The translations under genes were made by a program, and so were the position numbers. The notes under the pieces are model-generated. The model was not told the origin of the DNA. It saw nothing but the letters and a program-made list of their open reading frames with translations, and ran no database searches. Positions 12,548 to 26,828 of a stretch of 64,000 nucleotides of DNA are shown here, piece after piece (within the stretch, counting starts at the first letter, position 1; each line of letters opens with the position of its first letter). This stretch comes from Piromyces finnis finn (Eukaryota > Fungi > Neocallimastigomycota), in assembly GCA_002104945.1 (NCBI GenBank), contig MCFH01000024.1:372001-436000 (forward strand), read 5' to 3'.

Positions 12548-13170
12548 ATGTCATCATACCGTATGCCTGTCAATTATAATCCAATGTCTCCAGGAAGCCA
12601 ATATGAATACAGTGAATACAGTCCAAACGGTTATTCACCAAGCTACAATACTAGCTACTCTTCAAGTCAATATAATAAATACAGTCCAAGTCAACCAAAA
12701 GCTCAACAATACTATCAACAAAATTATCAACAAAACTATCAACAAAACTATCAACAAAAACAATACAGAGTTCAAAATCAAACTGGTGGAATTGGTATGA
12801 ATGCATCATCTACACTCTACAGTGTAAATCCAGATGCCGCCATGGCTTATCGTCAAAGAAAAATGCAACAAGCCGCTGAAAGAAAATACCAAAAACTTGT
12901 TCGTTTAACTAACCGTTTAAGAGATCAACTTCGTTTACAAACTATTCCAGTATCAAAAGCTGCTTGCTCGTAAGTATACTAAAAATAAAATATATTTAAG
13001 ATTTTTTGGTAAAAAAAATTTAAACTAATAAAATATATATATTATATAGTCTTGTAAACTATACTATTAGTGTTAAGGACCCACTTCTTCCATCTGTTTG
13101 GGGACCAATTGAAAAACGTGATAATCCATATGCTGCCACTAACAGTAAATGCTCTTGTATCATTATGTAA
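12548..13170 (+). CDS. STE18: Heterotrimeric G-protein gamma subunit (Ste18-like), 2 exons (12548-12969, 13050-13170), 180 aa
   Basis: The spliced product ends 'KYQKLVRLTNRLRDQLRLQTIPVSKAACSLVNYTISVKDPLLPSVWGPIEKRDNPYAATNSKCSCIIM*'. This is a GGL domain (DPLLP.WG motif) with a CaaX box (CIIM). The intron is GTAAGT..TAG and the joined frame is open. Confidence 0.92.
12713..12760 (+). repeat. 12-bp coding tandem repeat x4 (YQQN/YQQK) in the G-gamma N-terminal tail
   Basis: TATCAACAAAAT TATCAACAAAAC TATCAACAAAAC TATCAACAAAAA. Confidence 0.9.
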
Positions 13171-15710
13171 TTTAGCTTATAGACATATTTTTATCCTTTT
13201 TTCATTTACTTTTTTCTATATTACAGTAAATTAAATTTTAATAATTAAACTAATTAATAAATAAATCATCTACTTTTTTTGTTTACAGAAATAATAAATT
13301 TTAATTGCTATATTTTAAAAAATATTAGAAATTTCTTTAAATATTTTTAGTATATAATAAAATTTATATATTGAAAATTAAAGAGATTTTTTGTTTGATA
13401 TATATATAAATATAGAATTTAAATTTATAATACTTTTAAAAAAAGAATTAAAAGATTATCAAAAAATAATTTTTGGTAGAAACTTTTAAATTTGTGACAA
13501 AAAGTAGTTGATAGAAAATACTAAAGCATAAAAGCATATTATTTATCATATAGATCATTAAAATTCTCTTTTTATTTTAACCTTTTTTTTTCAACTATAA
13601 AAAAAGTTGAAAAAAAATTAGAAAGGAAAATATATTTATAATATATATTTCTTTATCGATTTAAAATTTAAAAAATTTAAATAAAAAATATTAAAAATAA
13701 AAAATATATACAAATATTTAAAACAAAATAAAAAAAAAAAAAAAAAACAAATAGCAACAAAGAAAACAAAAATTATTTAATATTATTATAAATATAGATA
13801 GAATTACTTTTTTTTTTTTTTTTTTTTATTTTAGTAGAGCGATCCATATTTTGAGAATATAAAAAGCATAACTATAAACAAAAAAAAAAAAGAAAAAGTA
13901 ATAAAAAGAAAAACAAATAAAAAATAAAAGCAATAGAAAATAAAAATATATTTAAAAAAAAGTGTTGAAGGAAAAAAAAAAAAATTTTTTTTAATTGTTT
14001 AGTAGGTTATATAATTGTAATTGTGAATGATTATTAGCCATATGTTGGAAAAAAAAAAAAAAAGGAAAGGAAAAAAGAATAAATATTTTTAGTCTAATGG
14101 TTTTTAACCCTTTATAGCACGAAGGAACTTTTTTTTTTTTTTCGTAACCATTTAGTTTATATTTATTTTGTATTATTTTGTTTGTTTGTTTGTTCGTTAA
14201 TAAACTTTATATTCCTTTTTTACTAATATTTTACTGTTGGTAGAGGGGAGGCGGTAGGTAACCCCTATAAGAATAACACAGTATTAAATTTAAAATATCA
14301 ATGTCAAAAAAAAAAAAAAGATACTTTAACAATTTTAGGGGGAAAAAAATTTATATATATATTGATATATTGATATCTTTAAAAAAAAAATTTTTTATTT
14401 TTTACCTCTTAAAAAATTATCACAGTCATGTATAGATAATCAAAAGGATTAAATTAAAAAAAAAAGTAGCTACTTATTACACTTGTAGAAATACAAGTAA
14501 AAGTAATAATAGTATTATTTAATTTATAAATTATGGTATTTCTACCTTTTACCTACCATAAGTCAACTTTGAAAAAAAAAAAAAAAGGTATTTATCTTGG
14601 AACAACAACAACAACATCATTATCAATTTATAAATCATCGTATAAATGATAATGACTGGATTGGGAAGAAATTCTAAAATAACTATCGTATATAAAAAAA
14701 TAAATGTGTGTGTTTAAGTTATAAAGACAACAAGCTTAGAACGTAAATAAAAAAAAAAAGTGAATTTTTTTTTTCTTAGTAATTCCACTACCATGATAAC
14801 AGGTCAAACAGAAAAAATGAGTAATTCCTCCTTCCCCCTTTAATAACAATATATCATTACATCATTCCATCTTCTATATCAAAATAAAATTTTTAAAAAT
14901 TCTTTCTTTTTTTTTTTTTTTAAATGAAAATTCTTTATTAAAACACAAAAATATAGGCCATTCCTTTACTTTCATGATCAGTAGTAAAACTTTTTTTTTT
15001 ATACAAATTTTCAAATTTTATTTACTTTTTAATAATTTTTTTTTTAAATACACTCTAAAAATTTTTATTTTTTAAAATAGAAAATAAAAAACTTTATAAT
15101 AAAAAAAAAAAGTAAAGGCGTTAATAACAAAATATTTATACAATTTTAAAATTAAAAAAAAAAATTATAGAATTTCTTATAACTCTTTTTTTTTTTCTAG
15201 AAATATAAAAAATTCAATAATTAATGATACTAAAATAACTAGAGTATTACGATAATTATTTTTTTTATAAGAATATACATATTCTTTTCAGTTTTCTTCT
15301 TCTTCAAGCTATTGTAAACTTTTTTACAACAACGATTTTTAAAAGTAGGATAAGATATGAATTTCAATTGATAGATATAGATAAAATATGTGTAATTATT
15401 TTTTTTTTCGAAAAGAGAAAAAAGAAAACTTTTTTTATGAAAAGTATGTATATAAAAGTTTAAATATTCCAGAAGAGAAAAAGGTCTATACACAAATATT
15501 TTTTTAATATTAAAAAAAGATTATTATAAACCAACATAATAACCAAAAAAAAAAAAAAAAAAAAGATACTCTTCTTTTTTTTAAAAAAGATTTTTTTTGT
15601 TTAAGTTTTTCTATCTTGTTCTAATTTTTCAAAATAGAAAAATATATTTTCCAAAAAGTTTATTAAAACAACCATTGGCTTGTTCTCTTGGCTATTTATC
15701 TTTATATTTT

Positions 15711-15902
15711 TTAAACAATCATTTGAATAGCATGTAATTGTTGAATAGAACCATCATTTTCGTTTGGATGTGGTAGCAAATGAGCAAGAAAACCATGCTT
15801 TTTTAAATTCTTAGATTTTTCAGACTTTTTGTCTTGATGCTTAGAATGGTTAATCTTGGAAGCTAAAGACATTAAATGACCGTTAGAATGATGAGATGCC
15901 AT
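15711..15902 (-). CDS. 63-aa micropeptide A, unknown family, paralog of 19568-19762
   Basis: AAAATGG start context. It shares MS.A.K.N, DKKSE.SK, F...LLP..NEN and GSIQQLHAIQMI with the second ORF. Aligned residues differ synonymously (GAC/GAT, AAG/AAA, TTG/TTA, CTA/TTA, AAC/AAT). Confidence 0.8.
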   Translation of the reverse strand: MASHHSNGHLMSLASKINHSKHQDKKSEKSKNLKKHGFLAHLLPHPNENDGSIQQLHAIQMIV

Positions 15903-18015
15903 TTTCCTTTTTCCTTTTTTTTTTTCTTTATTTCTTAGAGTAGCAATAAATTTTTTTTTTTTGTTTTTTTTTTTTATTATTTTTCAATTTAATAATATTC
16001 CCTTTTTTAAAAAAAAAAGCTATGTTTTTATTATTACTTTTTTTTTTAAAGTTTAATATTTAATTACACATTCAATTAATACTATTTTTATTATTTTTAA
16101 TAATGAAATAATGAAATTTTAATTAAAAAGAAACTTTTCCTTTTCTTTTATACCTTTTCACAAATTTAAAGTTTCTTTTAACCTAATTCAATTATATTAT
16201 AATGTAATATATGGTATTATTATATTTTAATATATTCTATTGATTTTAGACCTTTTTTCATAAATTAAAAATATCCATCCATATTAAAAAAATGGAATAA
16301 AATTTAAATTATTTTCTTTTAAAATTAATATATAGCTAATATATAATCAACTTGTATTTATTATATATTAAATTAAATTAAACTATTGAAAATCATCCAT
16401 TCCATAAAAATGCCGCCGTACATCATCAAACGATAACCAAAAAAAAAAAGACAATAAACAGAAAAAATTTAAACAGAAGTGGTCATGAGGTGTGGTGTGG
16501 TGATATTTAAACCAGAAAAATGATAAGGAGAATGCTGAAGGATGAATGGTGAAATGGTGAATGATAAAAAAAGATGAATGATAATCTAACCAGAAAAAAA
16601 AAGAAAAAGGCATCAAATTAAAGAAAGTTTCCCATTCTTTTACTAAAATTTTTAATTCCTAAAAGGAAAAGAAAGATTCTTTTTTTTTAGTTACCGCTTT
16701 CCTACGAAAATAAAATTAAATTTTAATTTTCGTATCATTCCTTTACCCAAAAAAATTTTCATTCCCCACAAATTATCCCAGAAGAAAAAAAAAATGAAAA
16801 TGAAATTGTTTAAAAAACTTTTTTTTTTGTATGCGTAATTATAAAATAAAAAAAAATAGAATTATCACCATAAGAAATGTAATAAAGTAAATATAAAAAA
16901 AAAACAAAAATTTAAACAGAAATTTAAAAAGCTTTCCTATTTCCTATACCAAAAAAATTTTTTCTGTAGCTAAAAATTTCATCCTAAAAAAATTATGTTT
17001 ACATTTTACATTTATGTACATTTTCCCTACATTTTATTATATTAAATGTAATAAAGAAAATATTATTTAATTTATCCTTTTTTTAATTTAAAAAAGGCTA
17101 ATTTAATTTAACCAGATCCATTTACATTCATGTGCTACATTTTCAAATGCATGACTAAAATATTTGGATATTATTCGTTAATGTAATGTATTAGTTGTTG
17201 ATCTATCAAAGTGATCTATTTTTTATTTTACTCTATTATCATCAAAGTATTAATTTTTATAAGGAAAAAAAAGATGGCAAAATTTGCTATTATTATTCTA
17301 TATCTTTTTTATTTATTATTATCTTTTCTATTATCCTTAATATATATTATATATGATTACTATATAATAATAGTATCATAAATATTATTATTGTGTTTTT
17401 TATATTTTTATGATAAAACTCAATTTATTTTAACCCTCCTTCTACCATCATCTTTTTTGTACTAGAAAATAGAAATTTTTTGAATAAAAATCTTAATTAT
17501 TATTATTATTTTAATTATTTAAAAATTTATAATTAATTTATAATTAATTTATCCAAATTAAAAATTAAAAAAAAAAACCAATATTAATTAAAAAAAAAAA
17601 AAATATGAACCATCCATCTATTTAAAAAAAAAAAGACTTTTAAGTTATTCCTTTATGTTTTTTTTTTAAAAAAAGAAAAAAGAGAAATTGTTAATAATCA
17701 TTTAGTCTTAAAAATGAAATAGTATTAATAAATAAATATTGACTCTTTTTTTTTTTTTGCAAAAATATAAAGTATTTTTTTATAAATTTATTTTTGGATG
17801 AATAAACCCATTTAAATTGATGAACGAGCAATTTCTTTTTTAAAAGATATAAATCAAAAAGTAGAAAAAATAAAATAAAATAAAATAAAATAAAATAAAA
17901 AGCAATAAAATTTTAAAATTTATAAAACTTTAGCTTTTATTAATGAGTTTTTTTTTTTTTTTTTTTATAATCATTTTGCTATAAAAAAAAAAAGTTTTAT
18001 CTATTAAAATCATGG

Positions 18016-18269
18016 TTATCTCAATAAATTTTTATTTTTTTTTTTTAACTTCCGAGTGCATTTCTCTCATCAATCGGAGTTAGCCCCAATGGTGGTTCTT
18101 AGAGAAACGTTGGCTCATTCCTATTGCTAGGTGATTGTGACCCTCCTGGTCTGTCATACTGTTTCTTCAGCTTCGACGCTCACTTAATCCATGTACATTA
18201 GATGCATGTCGTTGTACGATATTTCACAACTACAATACTAAGCCTCTTGTAGTCAATTATCTCAATAAA
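18016..18269 (-). mobile_element. Retroposed (SINE-like, 5'-truncated LINE tail or ncRNA retrocopy) 210-nt insertion with poly(A) tail and 13-bp target-site duplication
   Basis: TTATCTCAATAAA occurs at 18016-18028 and 18257-18269. A T-tract at 18029-18046 is poly(A) on the minus strand. The body (18047-18256) is much more GC-rich than its flanks, has stops in all three minus-strand frames and can form hairpins. Confidence 0.8.
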
Positions 18270-18309
18270 GTTTTTTGATACAGAAAGAATATAAAAAAAA
18301 TACAGAAAA

Positions 18310-18432
18310 TTTTATTTATTTATTTATTTATTTATTTATATATTTATTTATATATTTATTGATTGATTTATTGATTTATTTATTGATTTATTTATTTATT
18401 TATTTATTGATTTATTGATTTATTGATTTATT
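18310..18432. repeat. (TTTA)n microsatellite with ATTG/TATA variants
   Basis: Directly visible tetranucleotide array. Confidence 0.9.
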
Positions 18433-19567
18433 TAAAAAAAACCAATGTTATTCCAAATAAATTTTAATAAACTAATGAATATATAAAAAAAAAAAAGTAT
18501 CTTTTTTGATATTTTAAAATATATAGGCTTTTTAATTTCTTTAAAAAAATAATGTAGCATTAAAAATAATTTCCTTTTTTATCATAAAAAAAAAACGACC
18601 TCAGGTAAAAAATATTTATTATTACCATTTTGTGATAAAAAAGGTAATAATAAAATTTAATGCAGCATAATACAATATAATTGCTGCATTGTACTTTTTT
18701 TTTTTTATTATTATACTTTTAAATTAACATTTTTTTAATATTAATTTAACTATTTTTTTTTTATTTGATTGTTAAATTTGTTAAACATCTACATCTACTA
18801 TATAAATATACATCATATATTAACTGAAAAAGTTTTTTTATATTAAAACATAATTATTTTTTATTATTTATCAATTATATTCCTTTTCATTTTATAAAAA
18901 ATGACACAAAATACTAAATAAAAAATTAAACTACGGAGAAAATAAAATGTTGGTTCGAATAGATATTTATATAGAGATTATATCAAATAGGATTAAAATT
19001 ATTGTTTTATTTTTGTTTTGTTTGATTTTTGTCTTTCACCATTTTTATATTTTTATTTCGTTTTTATTTTTTTTATTAAAAAAAAAAAAAGAAAAATGTG
19101 TTTACGTTGATGATATAGAATTAATAGAAAAAGAAAGCGATAAAATTACTACTGAGTTTTTATAAAAATATATTTAAAATAAAAAAATAGATTTTCGTTA
19201 TTCATTGTATAATTTTTCATTATAAAATAATGATATCAAAAGATTCATATTTTTATTTTATTTTTTTTTTCCTAATAGGAATTAAATCAAATAGTTCTTT
19301 TGGAATTAAAAAACTTTTTTTTTTTTTTTGAAATTTAAGAATAGAATTTAAAGTGATATTGATAAAGGTATGTACACAACGAGTGAATTATTTACATGTT
19401 AAATTATCTTTCTTTTTTTTGGATTTTGATAATTTGAGAATATTTGTTAGTGTAAAATAGGAATAATAAAAAGATCAACCTTTTTTTTTTGGTATATTGT
19501 ATTTTCCTTATTTAATAGGAAATAGATAGTTTTTTAGTTTTTTTTTAAAAAAAATATTATTTTAAAT

Positions 19568-19762
19568 TTAGATAATCATTTGAATAGCATGTAATTGTTG
19601 AATAGAACCTCCTTCATTTTCATTAAGTTGTGGTAATAAACGTTTAAAAAAGTTGCTTCTCTTTTTAGATCTTTCAGACTTTTTATCACTTCCATTCATA
19701 GCCAAGTTAACCTTGGTAGCAGTAGACATAATAGAGTAGTTTGATTGAGTAGTAGTAACCAT
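19568..19762 (-). CDS. 64-aa micropeptide B, unknown family, paralog of 15711-15902
   Basis: AAAAATGG start context, the same motif order as micropeptide A, and C-terminus GSIQQLHAIQMII*. Confidence 0.8.
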   Translation of the reverse strand: MVTTTQSNYSIMSTATKVNLAMNGSDKKSERSKKRSNFFKRLLPQLNENEGGSIQQLHAIQMII

Positions 19763-22700
19763 TTTTCTTAACTTGTTTTTTTATTTAATTATTCAGTGAT
19801 TTGGTGGTGGTAGTAGTAGTAGTAGTATAATAATTTCTTATTGATAAAATATAAACTGTTTTCCTAATAATGGTAATAAAATGTAGTATATTATTTATTC
19901 TCTTATTTATCGGTTGTTTAAAGAAATTCAAATACGAGATATTTTAATGATAGTCTTGGGATAACAAAGTTAGTTTAACGCGTACTTTGAAAAAAAATAT
20001 ATACAAATATAAATATTATAAATATTACAAATATAAAATCTACAAAATATAATTTAAATGAAATTAAAAAAAAAACAAAGGTAAATTTTTGCCTTTAAAT
20101 ATTTTTTTACATTTTTAAAGTTTTTATAGACAAAATTAAAAAAATAAAACTTTAATTATTTCATTTTTGAATTGAATGCGTTTAATTAATGAAATAATAT
20201 AAATTAAGCTTTATTGATATATAATGGTATATATATTAAATTTATTTACAATATAATATTATATATATTAGAATACAAAGATTAATAAAAATTTAAATTT
20301 AATACATTTATTCCTTTTGAAATTTTTAATCCTAAAAACTTTAAAAAAAAGGACTATAGCTTTTCTCTCTAAAAATTTATAGAATATAAAATGATAAATC
20401 TAACACCAAAGTTATTTATAGTATATTATTATCTTTAAAGTTTAGACAATAATATAGTCTACAATACTTTTAAAGGCATTAACTTTTCATATCAACAACT
20501 TTCTTCTAGGTATAACACCACCTTTTTTATTTCTTAGGACTGCATGAATAAAGATGATTATATTTCAAAGTATCATAAAAAGAAATCTATAGGAATAATA
20601 TATTATCAATGTATTGTATTATATATAAAAATATATGATGTAATGCAATGTATTGAAAATAAATAAATTAATTAGTTTTAATAAATGAATAATTAAAAAA
20701 ATGAAAGAATATGGTAATTTTAAATTTTCGTATTAATTAATATATGCATTACATATACTATGAATATACTGGATAAATTAAAATAATTTTTACTACACGT
20801 TCAACTGTATTAATTTTTTATTAAAAATAAATATCAAAAATTGTATCAATTGTATTTACATTACACTCTAATATATATTGAACTATTTATTGAATAATAC
20901 TAATAATATATAGTTTTATTTATTTCTATTTAAATTTTTCAAAAGTTAAATTAATTTTTTATTATCAACTAATAATGTATCAAATTTGAAATGAATTATT
21001 ATATATTAAACTATAATTTACATATATTATCATTATTATTTTTCTATTTTATTCATATATTATAAATATAATCTAATATATAAGTTTGATATAATAAATT
21101 AAAGTTTTTATATTCTTCATGTGATGACAATTACAAAATAAAGTTTTTATTATTTTTCTTAATGGGAGGGGTTGGTGGTTGATTTAGGCATGAGAAAAAA
21201 GTAAAAAAGTAGAGGTAGAGGCAGAAGAAAAAAGAGAAAAAAGTAGCTTTTTCTTAACCTACTTTAATGACGGACAAAGGAAGGAATTTTATGGTTAAAA
21301 ATTCTCAATAAAAAAAAAAAAGTTAATTTGAATGGTTTAAAAAGAGGTAGATAAATTTCATAAAAGATAGTTCACAGTATCAGGAACAAATAAAATAAAA
21401 ATAATAATAAAACCTGTTAAAGAAAATAATTATTATTTTATTTTATTAATTTTATTAATAAATATACTTTATATATTTCATTATTCCAAAAAAAAAAAAA
21501 AAACTTTTATAACCTACATTTGACCTTTAAAGTATTGGCATTCACAACATGCATACATTAGGCATGACGTAATGTCTTTTTTTAATATGACACCATATAA
21601 ATTCTTTTTTCATTAAAAAAAAAAAAAAAAAAAAAAAAGATGGCTTTTTTTTTCTGACATCTTCCTTTCAATAAAGAAAAAAAAAACTATTTTAAAATAT
21701 CAATAATCATCATTTTCAAAAAGAAAAAGAATGATAGCATTACTATTTTATTTTTCAAATTTCGTCTTCATGAATACTATTCAAATGATATGTTGTAATT
21801 ACATAAAAATAATAGAGTAAATTTATATAAACTTTTACAATCAAAGAATTTTCAAAAGGTTTTTTTTTTTTTTTTTTTACAGGTGTACTCTATAATAGCA
21901 TCATCATCATAAATTAACTTTTTTGAAGGATTCTATACTATATAATTATTAACAAATAAAAGTTTTAATAAAGTAAAACTTATATATTATTAGCAAATAT
22001 AATTTAATAATAAAATCATATTAAAAAAAATCATATTATTATATCACACCTTTTTAAACAATTCAAACTCATGATATATAAAGTAAAATTAATAGTATAG
22101 CATGATATTTTAAATGCAATTTTTTATTTGTTAACAATTACATTTAAAAAGTTTAAATAATAAAAAATTATAATTAATAATTAAATATACCACCCACCCA
22201 CTAATAAACCCTAAAAGTAATTAGTCTATATTTAATATTTTAAATGACTACATTTTTGTCTATGTGTGTCTATGTGGATGAGTAGTTAAAAAAAAACTTT
22301 TTTATTATGTTCTAAAAGAAGAAAAAAGAAAAGATTAAAAGTTTATTTAAATAAAGCTAGGGTTTTTTTTTTTTTTGTTTTTGTTTTTCTTCTTCTAATT
22401 GATAATATTTTGATTATAAAAAAAAAAACTTGGAAATGTAAAATACAAACAAAAGTAATAATAATAAAAAGACATCTTATTAATATTTAGTATTTAAATA
22501 ATCTTTTAAAAGATCTAAAAATAAACTTGTAAAGTTTTGTTATACCATAAAATAATAAACATACGATAATCATTTACATAATAAAATCTAATATTTTTAT
22601 TAGTATTGTTATAAATTCCTTTTCATTATTTAAATAAAAAATGAATGTGACTTTTAATTAATAAATTTTAAAGTTTCATGCATGACCAAAATTTAAATAT

Positions 22701-25059: not shown

Positions 25060-26828
25060 TTATTCAGCTTTTTGTTCTTGGTTAGCAATCTTTTCACCCT
25101 TTTCGTTATAATTTTCAATAACCATATCATTAATACCAAAGTCTTCATTTTGTTGGAAGGTTCTTTCGTATTCTTCAATAATCATATTTGGATCTGGATC
25201 TGGAGCGTAAAGGTTTTGAAGGTATGAATTAGCTAATGGATCATCTAAAATAAGAGTAAATTCCTTCTTCATTTCCTTAACTTCATCAAGTTTTGAAAGG
25301 AATTCAGAGAATTTTTCTTTACGTTCTTCGGTAACAGAATCACCCTTAGTGAATGGAGTCTTGGTATCTAATTCTTCGTAAATTTGATCAAGTAAACCTT
25401 CAATAGTAGTGAAACGACCACCTAAAGTACCGTAAGTTAATTCTAAGTTAATTTCTGGAATCTTTAAGGCACAGGTTTCAGACTATTTTTAATTATAAAA
25501 TAATGATTTGTTATGTTAAAAAAAAAATTTATTTTTTTTTTAATAATCTCTTCTTTTTTTTATTCTATCAACTATGCGTTGCTTTTTATTTTAATTTGCT
25601 GCTTACCTTTAAGATATCTCTAGATAAATCTTCTTCATCAGTCATCTTTAAGGTAATACGCTTACCCTTTGGAGCGATAGCACCTCCAGCCTTAACTTCA
25701 TTACTCTTGTAACCACATTCATCACAATTAGTTGCCATAATGACGACTTCTTTAAAGTGAGGAATATTAAGCATGTGCATTTTAGTACTGCATGGAGCCT
25801 TACATGATGGACAAGTAGCATCGAAATGCATAACTTCATCAACATCAATATTAATATCATCTTCCTTTTCTTCCTTTTCAGCTTCTGGGTTGGCAGCAGC
25901 AACAACACCAAGAGCTTCATTTTGTTCCTTGGAACGAACATAGTGTCTAACTTCTAATTGTGGATCAGCAGCTGGAGCATTTAAGTTTTCAACAAAACTG
26001 TTACCAGTTGGATCATCAAGAGTGAAAGTGAATGGTTCATTACCATCACGTAAAGAAGTTAATCTATCAATAACAGATTGAATTTTGTCATATAATTCCT
26101 TATCCATGTGCTGAAATATATAATATTTCGATATAGGTTATATTTTATTGTTAATTTTATCCACATTTTGATATCATAAATATATTTTTTTTTCAATTTT
26201 ATTCTATTTAATTTTTACCATTCTGATTGGTTGTTCTTGGGAAAGACCTTCAATAGCGTGAGTAATGATACCTTCAATAGTAGTTAAAACACCACGTTGA
26301 GAACCAGCTGGAATTTCAAATTCTAATTCTTCAAATCTACAAGTAGAAGTTTCAGCCTTTAAAACTTGTCTACTTAAATCCTATTATAAATAAAAAGAAA
26401 ACCATTATTAGATTTCTATTTGTATTTTTAAAGTTTTTTTTTTTTTTTTTTGAATTAGATAATTTACTCTTGGAGTCTTGATTTGACAAACGGCGTGAAC
26501 ACCAGTTTCAGAAATTTCAGAAGCAGATTGAACTTCATTATTTCTGAAACCACAGTGTGGACATTCAAAAGCCATAATAATAACTTCTCTAAAGTATGGA
26601 ATTTTTGTTAATAATAAACGAGTAGTACCCTATTATTATTCATAAACACAGGATAAATTGAATTACATAAATATTACATTCAAAAAAAAAAAAATATTTT
26701 CTTTTTATTTCATAATAGTGTGATGTTTTTATTATTACATTTTCATGGCAATTCATACAAAGAGATTCAATTTCAGTACAGCCTTGTTCGGCATTAAGTT
26801 CTAAAACAATTGGTTCTGGTTGAGCCAT
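25060..26828 (-). CDS. ZPR1: Zinc-finger protein ZPR1, 5 exons (26828-26739, 26629-26468, 26380-26219, 26110-25607, 25482-25060)
   Basis: Two C4 zinc-finger/AHD modules: 'EIESLCMNCHEN|GTTRLLLTKIPYFREVIIMAFECPHCGFRNNEVQ' and 'FDATCPSCKAPC...IPHFKEVVIMATNCDECGYKSNEVKAGG'. It also has 'FTLDDPTGNSFVEN' and 'LILDDPLANSYLQN'. All introns are GT-AG and the joined frame is open. Confidence 0.97.

Follow-up and report, generated by a model that had tools for sequence, protein, structure and literature searches.

Two tandem small-ORF genes of Piromyces finnis, probable members of a microprotein family found only in Neocallimastigomycota

The window that we analysed (64,000 nucleotides of the Piromyces finnis genome) carries two short open reading frames, here called A and B (Table 1). 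Sequence comparison indicates that they are probably two real, separate and intron-less protein-coding genes. They would derive from an old tandem duplication and belong to a microprotein family found only in Neocallimastigomycota. An earlier note on this DNA had placed two paralogous small ORFs here, and we confirm them. Both are on the minus strand, and their proteins share 34 of 65 positions (52% identity, BLASTP E 6e-20). Gene B lies upstream in the direction of transcription, 3,665 nt from gene A. Protein search, profile search and a degenerate motif pattern agree that the 56-Mb P. finnis genome has exactly two copies, A and B.

Table 1. Coordinates of the two genes, their protein segments, the conserved flanking blocks and the orthologues (window positions unless another sequence is named).
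Feature	Position	Strand	Remarks
Gene A, complete ORF with stop codon, 63 aa	15711..15902	minus	His-rich paralogue, 9 His
Gene B, complete ORF with stop codon, 64 aa	19568..19762	minus	Ser/Thr-rich paralogue
C-terminal module of A, codons of GSIQQLHAIQMIV	15714..15752	minus	predicted helix, residues 51-62
C-terminal module of B, codons of GSIQQLHAIQMII	19571..19609	minus	
Basic-hydrophobic segment of A, D24-P44	15771..15833	minus	Lys-rich run, then GFLAHLLP; model helix 34-42
Basic-hydrophobic segment of B, D26-P44	19631..19687	minus	DKKSERSKKR, then NFFKRLLP
Conserved block in the 3' flank of A, TATTTGTGTATAGAC	15483..15505	minus	common to L013, L014 and E2
Conserved block 40-65 nt past the stop codon of B	19504..19530	minus	common to L013, partly E2
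AT-rich block 330-380 nt 5' of the ATG of B	20092..20141	minus	TATA-like motif; 36/50 columns identical (window, L013, L019)
Conserved block upstream of B, ATTTATCCAGTA...	20752..20778	minus	
Conserved block with TCACATGA, about 1.35 kb 5' of the ATG of B	21099..21126	minus	
Type A orthologues	P0002, P0003, L019:8208-8393		
Type B orthologues	P0004-P0010, L019:1671-1859		

The length of these ORFs is not significant by itself at about 17% GC. The weight of the argument rests on paralogy and orthology. The two ORFs have a GC content of 31-32%, whereas their flanks have 15-20%. When the window's 53 ATG-ORFs of 45-100 aa are ranked by codon usage, A and B come 4th and 6th, beside true exons of ZPR1. 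Their flanks had been described as unalignable, and they indeed align only at the level of the AT-rich background. The neighbours named in the earlier note were also located. They are the G-gamma gene, each exon of which was checked by family search (exon 2 at 13048-13167), and ZPR1 (25060-26828, minus strand). The A/B family shows no link to the G-gamma gene or the potassium-channel genes nearby.

The family has 12 distinct members, four of type A and eight of type B, ten of them besides the P. finnis pair. Piromyces sp. E2 (L019) and the metagenome contig L013 keep the tandem order, B and then A. All 12 present the start context aaaATGG and a TAA at the same place, and every orthologue has in-frame stops 2-29 codons 5' of the ATG. 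Between species, the similarity at the DNA level is confined to the ORF. It sets in 8-29 nt 5' of the ATG and extends to the stop codon or 18 nt past it. The indels among the ORFs are multiples of three without exception. These are the features of a conserved small-ORF gene: a complete ORF of fewer than 100 codons, with its start and stop kept, outside any longer coding sequence.

The substitution pattern indicates that A and B are under purifying selection at the protein level, as the earlier note had proposed. Within each orthologue type, dN/dS takes values of 0.06-0.38, with a pooled value of 0.25 (NG86). The last 14 aligned codons have a pN of 0.00-0.03 vs a pS of 0.17-0.26. With Fisher tests on independent pairs, p values range from 3e-3 to 4e-7. 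The B orthologues show no non-synonymous change in their last 12 residues, and those of A very few. Synonymous variants are located at G51, A58, I59 and the last codon.

These values also bear on a different explanation, in which conservation acts on an RNA or DNA element, for instance a regulatory sequence or a long non-coding RNA, that happens to contain open frames. The 36 nt encoding GSIQQLHAIQMI are identical in both P. finnis copies (15717-15752 in A, 19574-19609 in B); 100 shuffles gave no match. Six consecutive codons are constant in the 12 sequences. Moreover, the 3' UTR blocks of the relatives exceed synonymous sites in conservation. Nevertheless, this explanation is very unlikely. 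Changes in the ORFs are mainly synonymous, ATG and stop codon mark the limits of conservation, and the indels keep the frame. No Rfam family was matched. Most of the invariant codons are CAA, TTA, TCT or CAT, which the genome prefers, so a constraint on the motif at the nucleotide level is unsupported.

The family proteins have 61-64 residues, are basic (pI about 10) and lack cysteine. Type A presents 8-9 histidines vs 1-3 in type B. The C-terminal motif had been reported as invariant from the two paralogues. This holds in all 12 members, where twelve residues of the tail are fixed with the exception of one I-to-V change. The fixed pattern is I-x-x-L-x-x-I-x-M-I-I, and the polar Gln and His are also fixed. 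The tail, of 12-13 residues including Gln and His, has a mean hydrophobicity of 0.4. With its low hydrophobic moment (0.2), it does not qualify as a classic amphipathic helix. By eye, I53-xx-L56-xx-I59-x-M61 matches the spacing of a leucine-rich export signal. The AlphaFold model, of low confidence (pLDDT 59), presents helices at residues 34-42 and 51-62 and coil elsewhere, with a disordered N-terminal half.

The helix, loop and helix of this model could be read as a degenerate, single EF-hand-like unit in the C-terminal half, pairing with another copy, either between A and B or as a homodimer. The loop NENDGSI even holds the D-G-x-I core of an EF-hand loop. However, Leu/Gln and His occupy the loop positions 1 and 12, and not Asp and Glu, and no EF-hand model of Pfam matches even at E 10. 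We consider this assignment highly doubtful; the acidic ligands at 1, 3, 5 and 12 that define EF-hands (PF00036, PF13499 and related) are absent as a set. Other identities were also rejected. A tail-anchored protein of the RAMP4/SERP type (PF06624) has a hydrophobic segment of about 20 residues, which is absent here, and Pfam gives no match. For the PIP box and the LC8 and PP1 docking motifs, the defining residues are absent or differ between A and B.

The family has no detectable relative beyond itself among 1.84 billion protein representatives, as judged by profile search. This search recovered the two clusters of the family and only two further proteins, P0011 and P0012. These are internally repeated and match the low-complexity middle of the profile alone, so we take them as spurious. 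Pfam gave no match even at E 10, and NCBIfam and the PDB sequences gave nothing usable; a near-match to a methyltransferase in the PDB (E 1.7) is due to chance. The statement that no family could be recognised is thereby borne out by Pfam, NCBIfam, the PDB and the profile search. Both searches of the ESM Atlas gave nothing usable for the family; the atlas contains protein A, letter for letter. In the literature on small ORFs in Neocallimastigomycota, and by run and sample accessions, we found nothing relevant.

Two deposited proteins of Piromyces sp. E2 belong to the family, PIROE2DRAFT_5065 (OUM67531.1) as orthologue of B and PIROE2DRAFT_5063 (OUM67530.1) as orthologue of A. Like the P. finnis pair, they lie on one scaffold in the same tandem order and carry the invariant C-terminal motif, and they are true orthologues. 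Both are hypothetical proteins without name, family or publication. Their models are wrong. PIROE2DRAFT_5065 lacks 9 residues, because a false intron of 27 nt was cut from an otherwise intact ORF. In PIROE2DRAFT_5063, a model of 190 aa, the last residue and the stop codon are replaced by a low-complexity tail of 130 residues, present in no other genome compared. The expectation that annotation would miss these genes is therefore correct in part. The E2 orthologues are deposited and metagenome gene callers do report family ORFs, but both E2 models are wrong.

The longer model, whose first 60 residues are those of A, could indicate that each ORF belongs, as a single exon, to a larger gene that is spliced. 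The frame of A is also open for 27 codons 5' of its ATG. This is hardly credible. The 130-residue tail has no counterpart in the window, in L013, or in L014, which reaches 4.5 kb downstream. TAA always follows the motif directly, the sequence 5' of the ATG is unconserved, and the 27 nt taken as an intron in the type B model belong to an intact ORF. A terminal exon of a larger gene, which the earlier note had named as a case against its claim, is not supported by these comparisons. That A and B are precursors of exported pheromone-like signalling peptides, released at dibasic KR sites, is similarly remote: KR or KKR does precede the conserved C-terminal 22-27 residues and the tandem copies adjoin the G-gamma gene, but the proteins lack a signal peptide and, being free of cysteine, also the CAAX box of an a-factor type lipopeptide precursor, gene adjacency is weak evidence in a eukaryote, and we know of no sexual cycle in the phylum.

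As separate genes, A and B resemble the general class of lineage-restricted small-ORF microproteins. They have fewer than 100 codons and appear to be stand-alone ORFs on comparatively long transcripts. They also share with this class purifying selection, a short conserved helix as functional core and a tendency to be mis-annotated. They differ from the class at large in having no described member, in being restricted to gut fungi, and in forming a conserved tandem pair with common 3' UTR elements.

Regarding the flanks, the AT-rich block closest to the ATG of B may be its core promoter, and the most distant of the upstream blocks may serve as a regulatory site. The earlier note had linked regulated expression to GC-rich islands (16.4-17.2 kb and 21.1-21.7 kb), but the syntenic loci show no conservation of these islands. 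The upstream blocks that are conserved have other positions and an AT-rich composition. Downstream, the block in the 3' flank of A is the first of the common 3' UTR layout of the family. A 3' UTR element is conserved and common to both paralogues in most relatives. Searches of the window and of the complete P. finnis genome gave no match to it; in this species the element is degenerate. A hairpin reading of this element lacks compensatory support and was rejected. Logan contigs of 1.2-1.4 kb from 10 runs are compatible with mRNAs, yet they are collinear with DNA contigs, and some end at homopolymer runs. Long UTRs with elements conserved in both paralogues and in most species suggest post-transcriptional control.

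We tentatively propose that A and B are each a small docking or regulatory subunit with paralogue-specific inputs. The invariant C-terminal segment, together with the preceding KKR-x-FFKRLLP, would form a helix-loop-helix module for binding a single conserved partner. Divergence of the N-terminal halves (8-9 His in A, Ser/Thr-rich in B) might give each paralogue a different input or regulation. The Lys/Arg cluster resembles by eye a nuclear-import signal, and the tail could fit the export-signal spacing Phi-xx-Phi-xx-Phi-x-Phi. From these two likenesses, one concrete, though unlikely, version of the docking subunit would be a PKI-like shuttling protein, an inhibitor or adaptor. PKI (PF02827), the heat-stable inhibitor of cAMP-dependent protein kinase, has about 75 residues, is disordered and docks rather than catalyses. 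In its layout, a basic recognition segment is followed by a short hydrophobic export-signal helix.

A and B are likewise short, largely disordered proteins with a basic segment before a predicted hydrophobic helix. However, this analogy is improbable as an identity. There is no Pfam match at E 10, and the R-R-N-A-I pseudosubstrate is absent. The spacing in the basic segment is variable (KKR, 1-2 residues, FF): the alignment reads KKR, then [S/N/G] plus 0-1 residue, then F[F/L]. The polar residues of the tail are invariant too, a constraint that an export signal alone does not need.

More broadly, it is conceivable, although rather speculative, that the family is a module specific to Neocallimastigomycota whose C-terminal helix docks on a conserved core machine. 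This could be a kinase, the transport machinery or the ribosome. A and B would sense different inputs; the His-rich A could respond to pH or metal, and the Ser/Thr-rich B to phosphorylation. Control of the mRNAs would pass through a 3' UTR element older than the duplication.

No long-standing open question is touched by the family. Anaerobic gut fungi play an important part in the breakdown of lignocellulose, and the annotation of their genomes is poor. The sole deposited models of this family are wrong, so its definition corrects the annotation. The invariant tail is short enough to be synthesised as a bait for finding partners. For the biology of these fungi, the A/B family, cleanly defined, strongly constrained and with no relatives found outside the phylum, adds a candidate lineage-specific regulator.

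Two small open reading frames, A (His-rich) and B (Ser/Thr-rich), are a real, strongly constrained and phylum-restricted microprotein gene pair. The protein comparison of both gives 52% identity (E 6e-20). Their shared C-terminal motif, GSIQQLHAIQMI, is encoded by the same 36 nt in A and B, without a third occurrence in the window; 0 of 100 shuffles matched this stretch. The flanks of the two genes show no alignment above the AT-rich background. In the whole P. finnis genome (56.46 Mb, 232 contigs, about 17% GC; window at C150:372001-436000), the protein search, the family profile and the degenerate motif pattern each placed the family at A and B only. Codon usage in both ORFs is coding-like, ranking 4 and 6 among 53 small ORFs, beside the true ZPR1 exons. 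The paralogous pair with a common C-terminus, which the earlier note had proposed, is thus confirmed.

Coordinates of the gene pair, its neighbours and the conserved blocks (L013, metagenome contig; L019, Piromyces sp. E2; L010, L020 and L023, other loci of relatives)
Feature	Sequence	Position	Strand	Remark
ORF A	window	15711-15902	minus	63 aa, from ORF listing
ORF B	window	19568-19762	minus	64 aa, from ORF listing; 3,665 nt from A
B	L013	3097-3285
A	L013	7833-8018
B; model PIROE2DRAFT_5065	L019	1671-1859
A	L019	8208-8393
Model PIROE2DRAFT_5063	L019	8208-10232
Block past stop of B	window	19504-19530		common to window and L013, in part L019
AT-rich non-coding block upstream of B	window	20092-20141	minus	TATA-like; common to window, L013, L019
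AT-rich non-coding block upstream of B	window	20752-20778	minus	common to window, L013, L019
AT-rich non-coding block upstream of B	window	21099-21126	minus	common to window, L013, L019
77-codon frame	window	16383-16616	minus	GC-richer island upstream of A
G-gamma gene	window	12548-12973, 13048-13167	plus	two exons; PF00631 in exon 2 only, 36.5 bits
ZPR1	window	25060-26828
3' UTR block	L010	631-720
3' UTR block	L023	705-792
3' UTR block	L013	8220-8319		A type
3' UTR block	L013	3476-3571		B type
3' UTR block	L019	8650-8773
A-type ORF	L020	877-1059
PEBP/YbhB-like ORF	L020	88-516		by eye; 360 nt upstream of A-type ORF

A word-index protein search returned ten more distinct family proteins of 53-62 aa, and close orthologues of A and B are present in Piromyces sp. 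E2. The N-terminus splits the family into two types, A (MASHH...) and B (MVTTTQSN...). We obtained DNA for all of them, giving 12 distinct coding sequences (4 type A, 8 type B). All 12 have an aaaATGG start, preceded by an in-frame stop at a distance of 2-29 codons, and TAA immediately after the motif. Their indels are whole codons without exception. Between P. finnis and other species, the DNA similarity starts 8-29 nt 5' of the ATG. It stops at the stop codon in B and 18 nt beyond it in A.

Selection at the protein level, already suspected, was upheld by the Nei-Gojobori estimates. The dN/dS ratio was 0.06-0.38 within each type and 0.25 when pooled, with p values from 3e-3 to 4e-7 (Fisher tests, independent pairs). 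The last 14 aligned codons show pN of 0.00-0.03 versus pS of 0.17-0.26, and synonymous changes occur at G51, A58, I59 and the last codon. When A is compared with B, pN in the N-terminal third is 0.45 and pS 0.35, so this part of the two proteins has diverged since the duplication.

A and B could instead be exons of a larger gene, the earlier note having named a terminal exon. The E2 model PIROE2DRAFT_5063 (190 aa) does fuse residues 1-60 of A with a 130-residue low-complexity tail. However, this extension has no counterpart in the window, L013 or L014 (another syntenic locus). Likewise, the 62-codon ORF behind PIROE2DRAFT_5065 (53 aa) is intact, but the model skips 27 nt of it. We take this 27-nt intron as false and both E2 models as modelling artefacts, and the exon reading is very unlikely.

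Ten Logan runs also yielded type B proteins, on contigs some 1.2-1.4 kb long. These contigs have variable 5' ends and similar 3' ends. Some 170-320 nt separate the type B ORF from the 5' end, and it is the sole conserved ORF there. They are collinear with metagenomic DNA contigs, which gives no sign of an intron, and some ends coincide with homopolymer runs. They are compatible with mRNAs without proving them.

The order is the same in the window, L013 and L019, with B upstream, A downstream and both on one strand, so the duplication is older than the split of these three genomes. The Rfam families gave no match in 13-25 kb of the window. A second G-gamma gene is found on contig C222 (908843-909037). 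L020 is a 1.16-kb JGI contig; its initial 635 nt are without a match in L013-L016, the syntenic contigs. Either the assembly is chimeric or a related strain has a different arrangement here.

One of the three blocks upstream of B contains TCACATGA, and the TATA-like motif is placed roughly where a 5' UTR of some 300 nt would call for it. The GC-rich islands of the earlier note (16.4-17.2 and 21.1-21.7 kb) did not hold up, being without conservation in syntenic loci. The 77-codon frame has many His, Phe and Ser codons and no counterpart in these loci; it resembles low-complexity sequence.

In all relatives checked, the 3' UTR of A-type and B-type genes alike carries a single block of about 80-120 nt, starting 140-230 nt past the stop. 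Two arms, TTTCCAAG and TTGGAAAAGAT, flank a loop of variable length, and additional conserved blocks are found on both sides. Its conservation exceeds that of synonymous sites. Both paralogues have the block, so it is older than the duplication. In P. finnis, both copies are degenerate. RNAalifold predicts a hairpin weakly, with no compensatory changes.

No recognised family had been seen for A and B, and the searches agree. No relatives were returned from Pfam, NCBIfam, the sequences of the PDB or the ESM Atlas; protein A itself is in the Atlas, identical letter for letter. The profile search was exhaustive over 1.84 billion representatives and gave nothing beyond the family's own two clusters and two repeat proteins, judged spurious.

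All members are basic (pI 9.7-10.4), and neither Cys nor Trp occurs in any of them. There are 8-9 His in type A, against 1-3 His together with 10-13 Ser/Thr in type B. Among the columns that never vary are N7, an internal Met-Ser, K26, E28, F38, L43-P44, E48 and the 12 C-terminal residues. AlphaFold, given the alignment of all 12 sequences, produced a weak model (pLDDT 59), with coil to residue 33 and helices at 34-42 and 51-62. Hydrophobic residues recur at three-residue intervals in the tail, whose helical moment is low (0.2). By pattern-matching only, the Lys/Arg cluster and the tail spacing resemble an import and an export signal. The proteins would contain a docking module for a single conserved partner, and the variable N-terminal halves of A and B may be the carriers of regulatory input.
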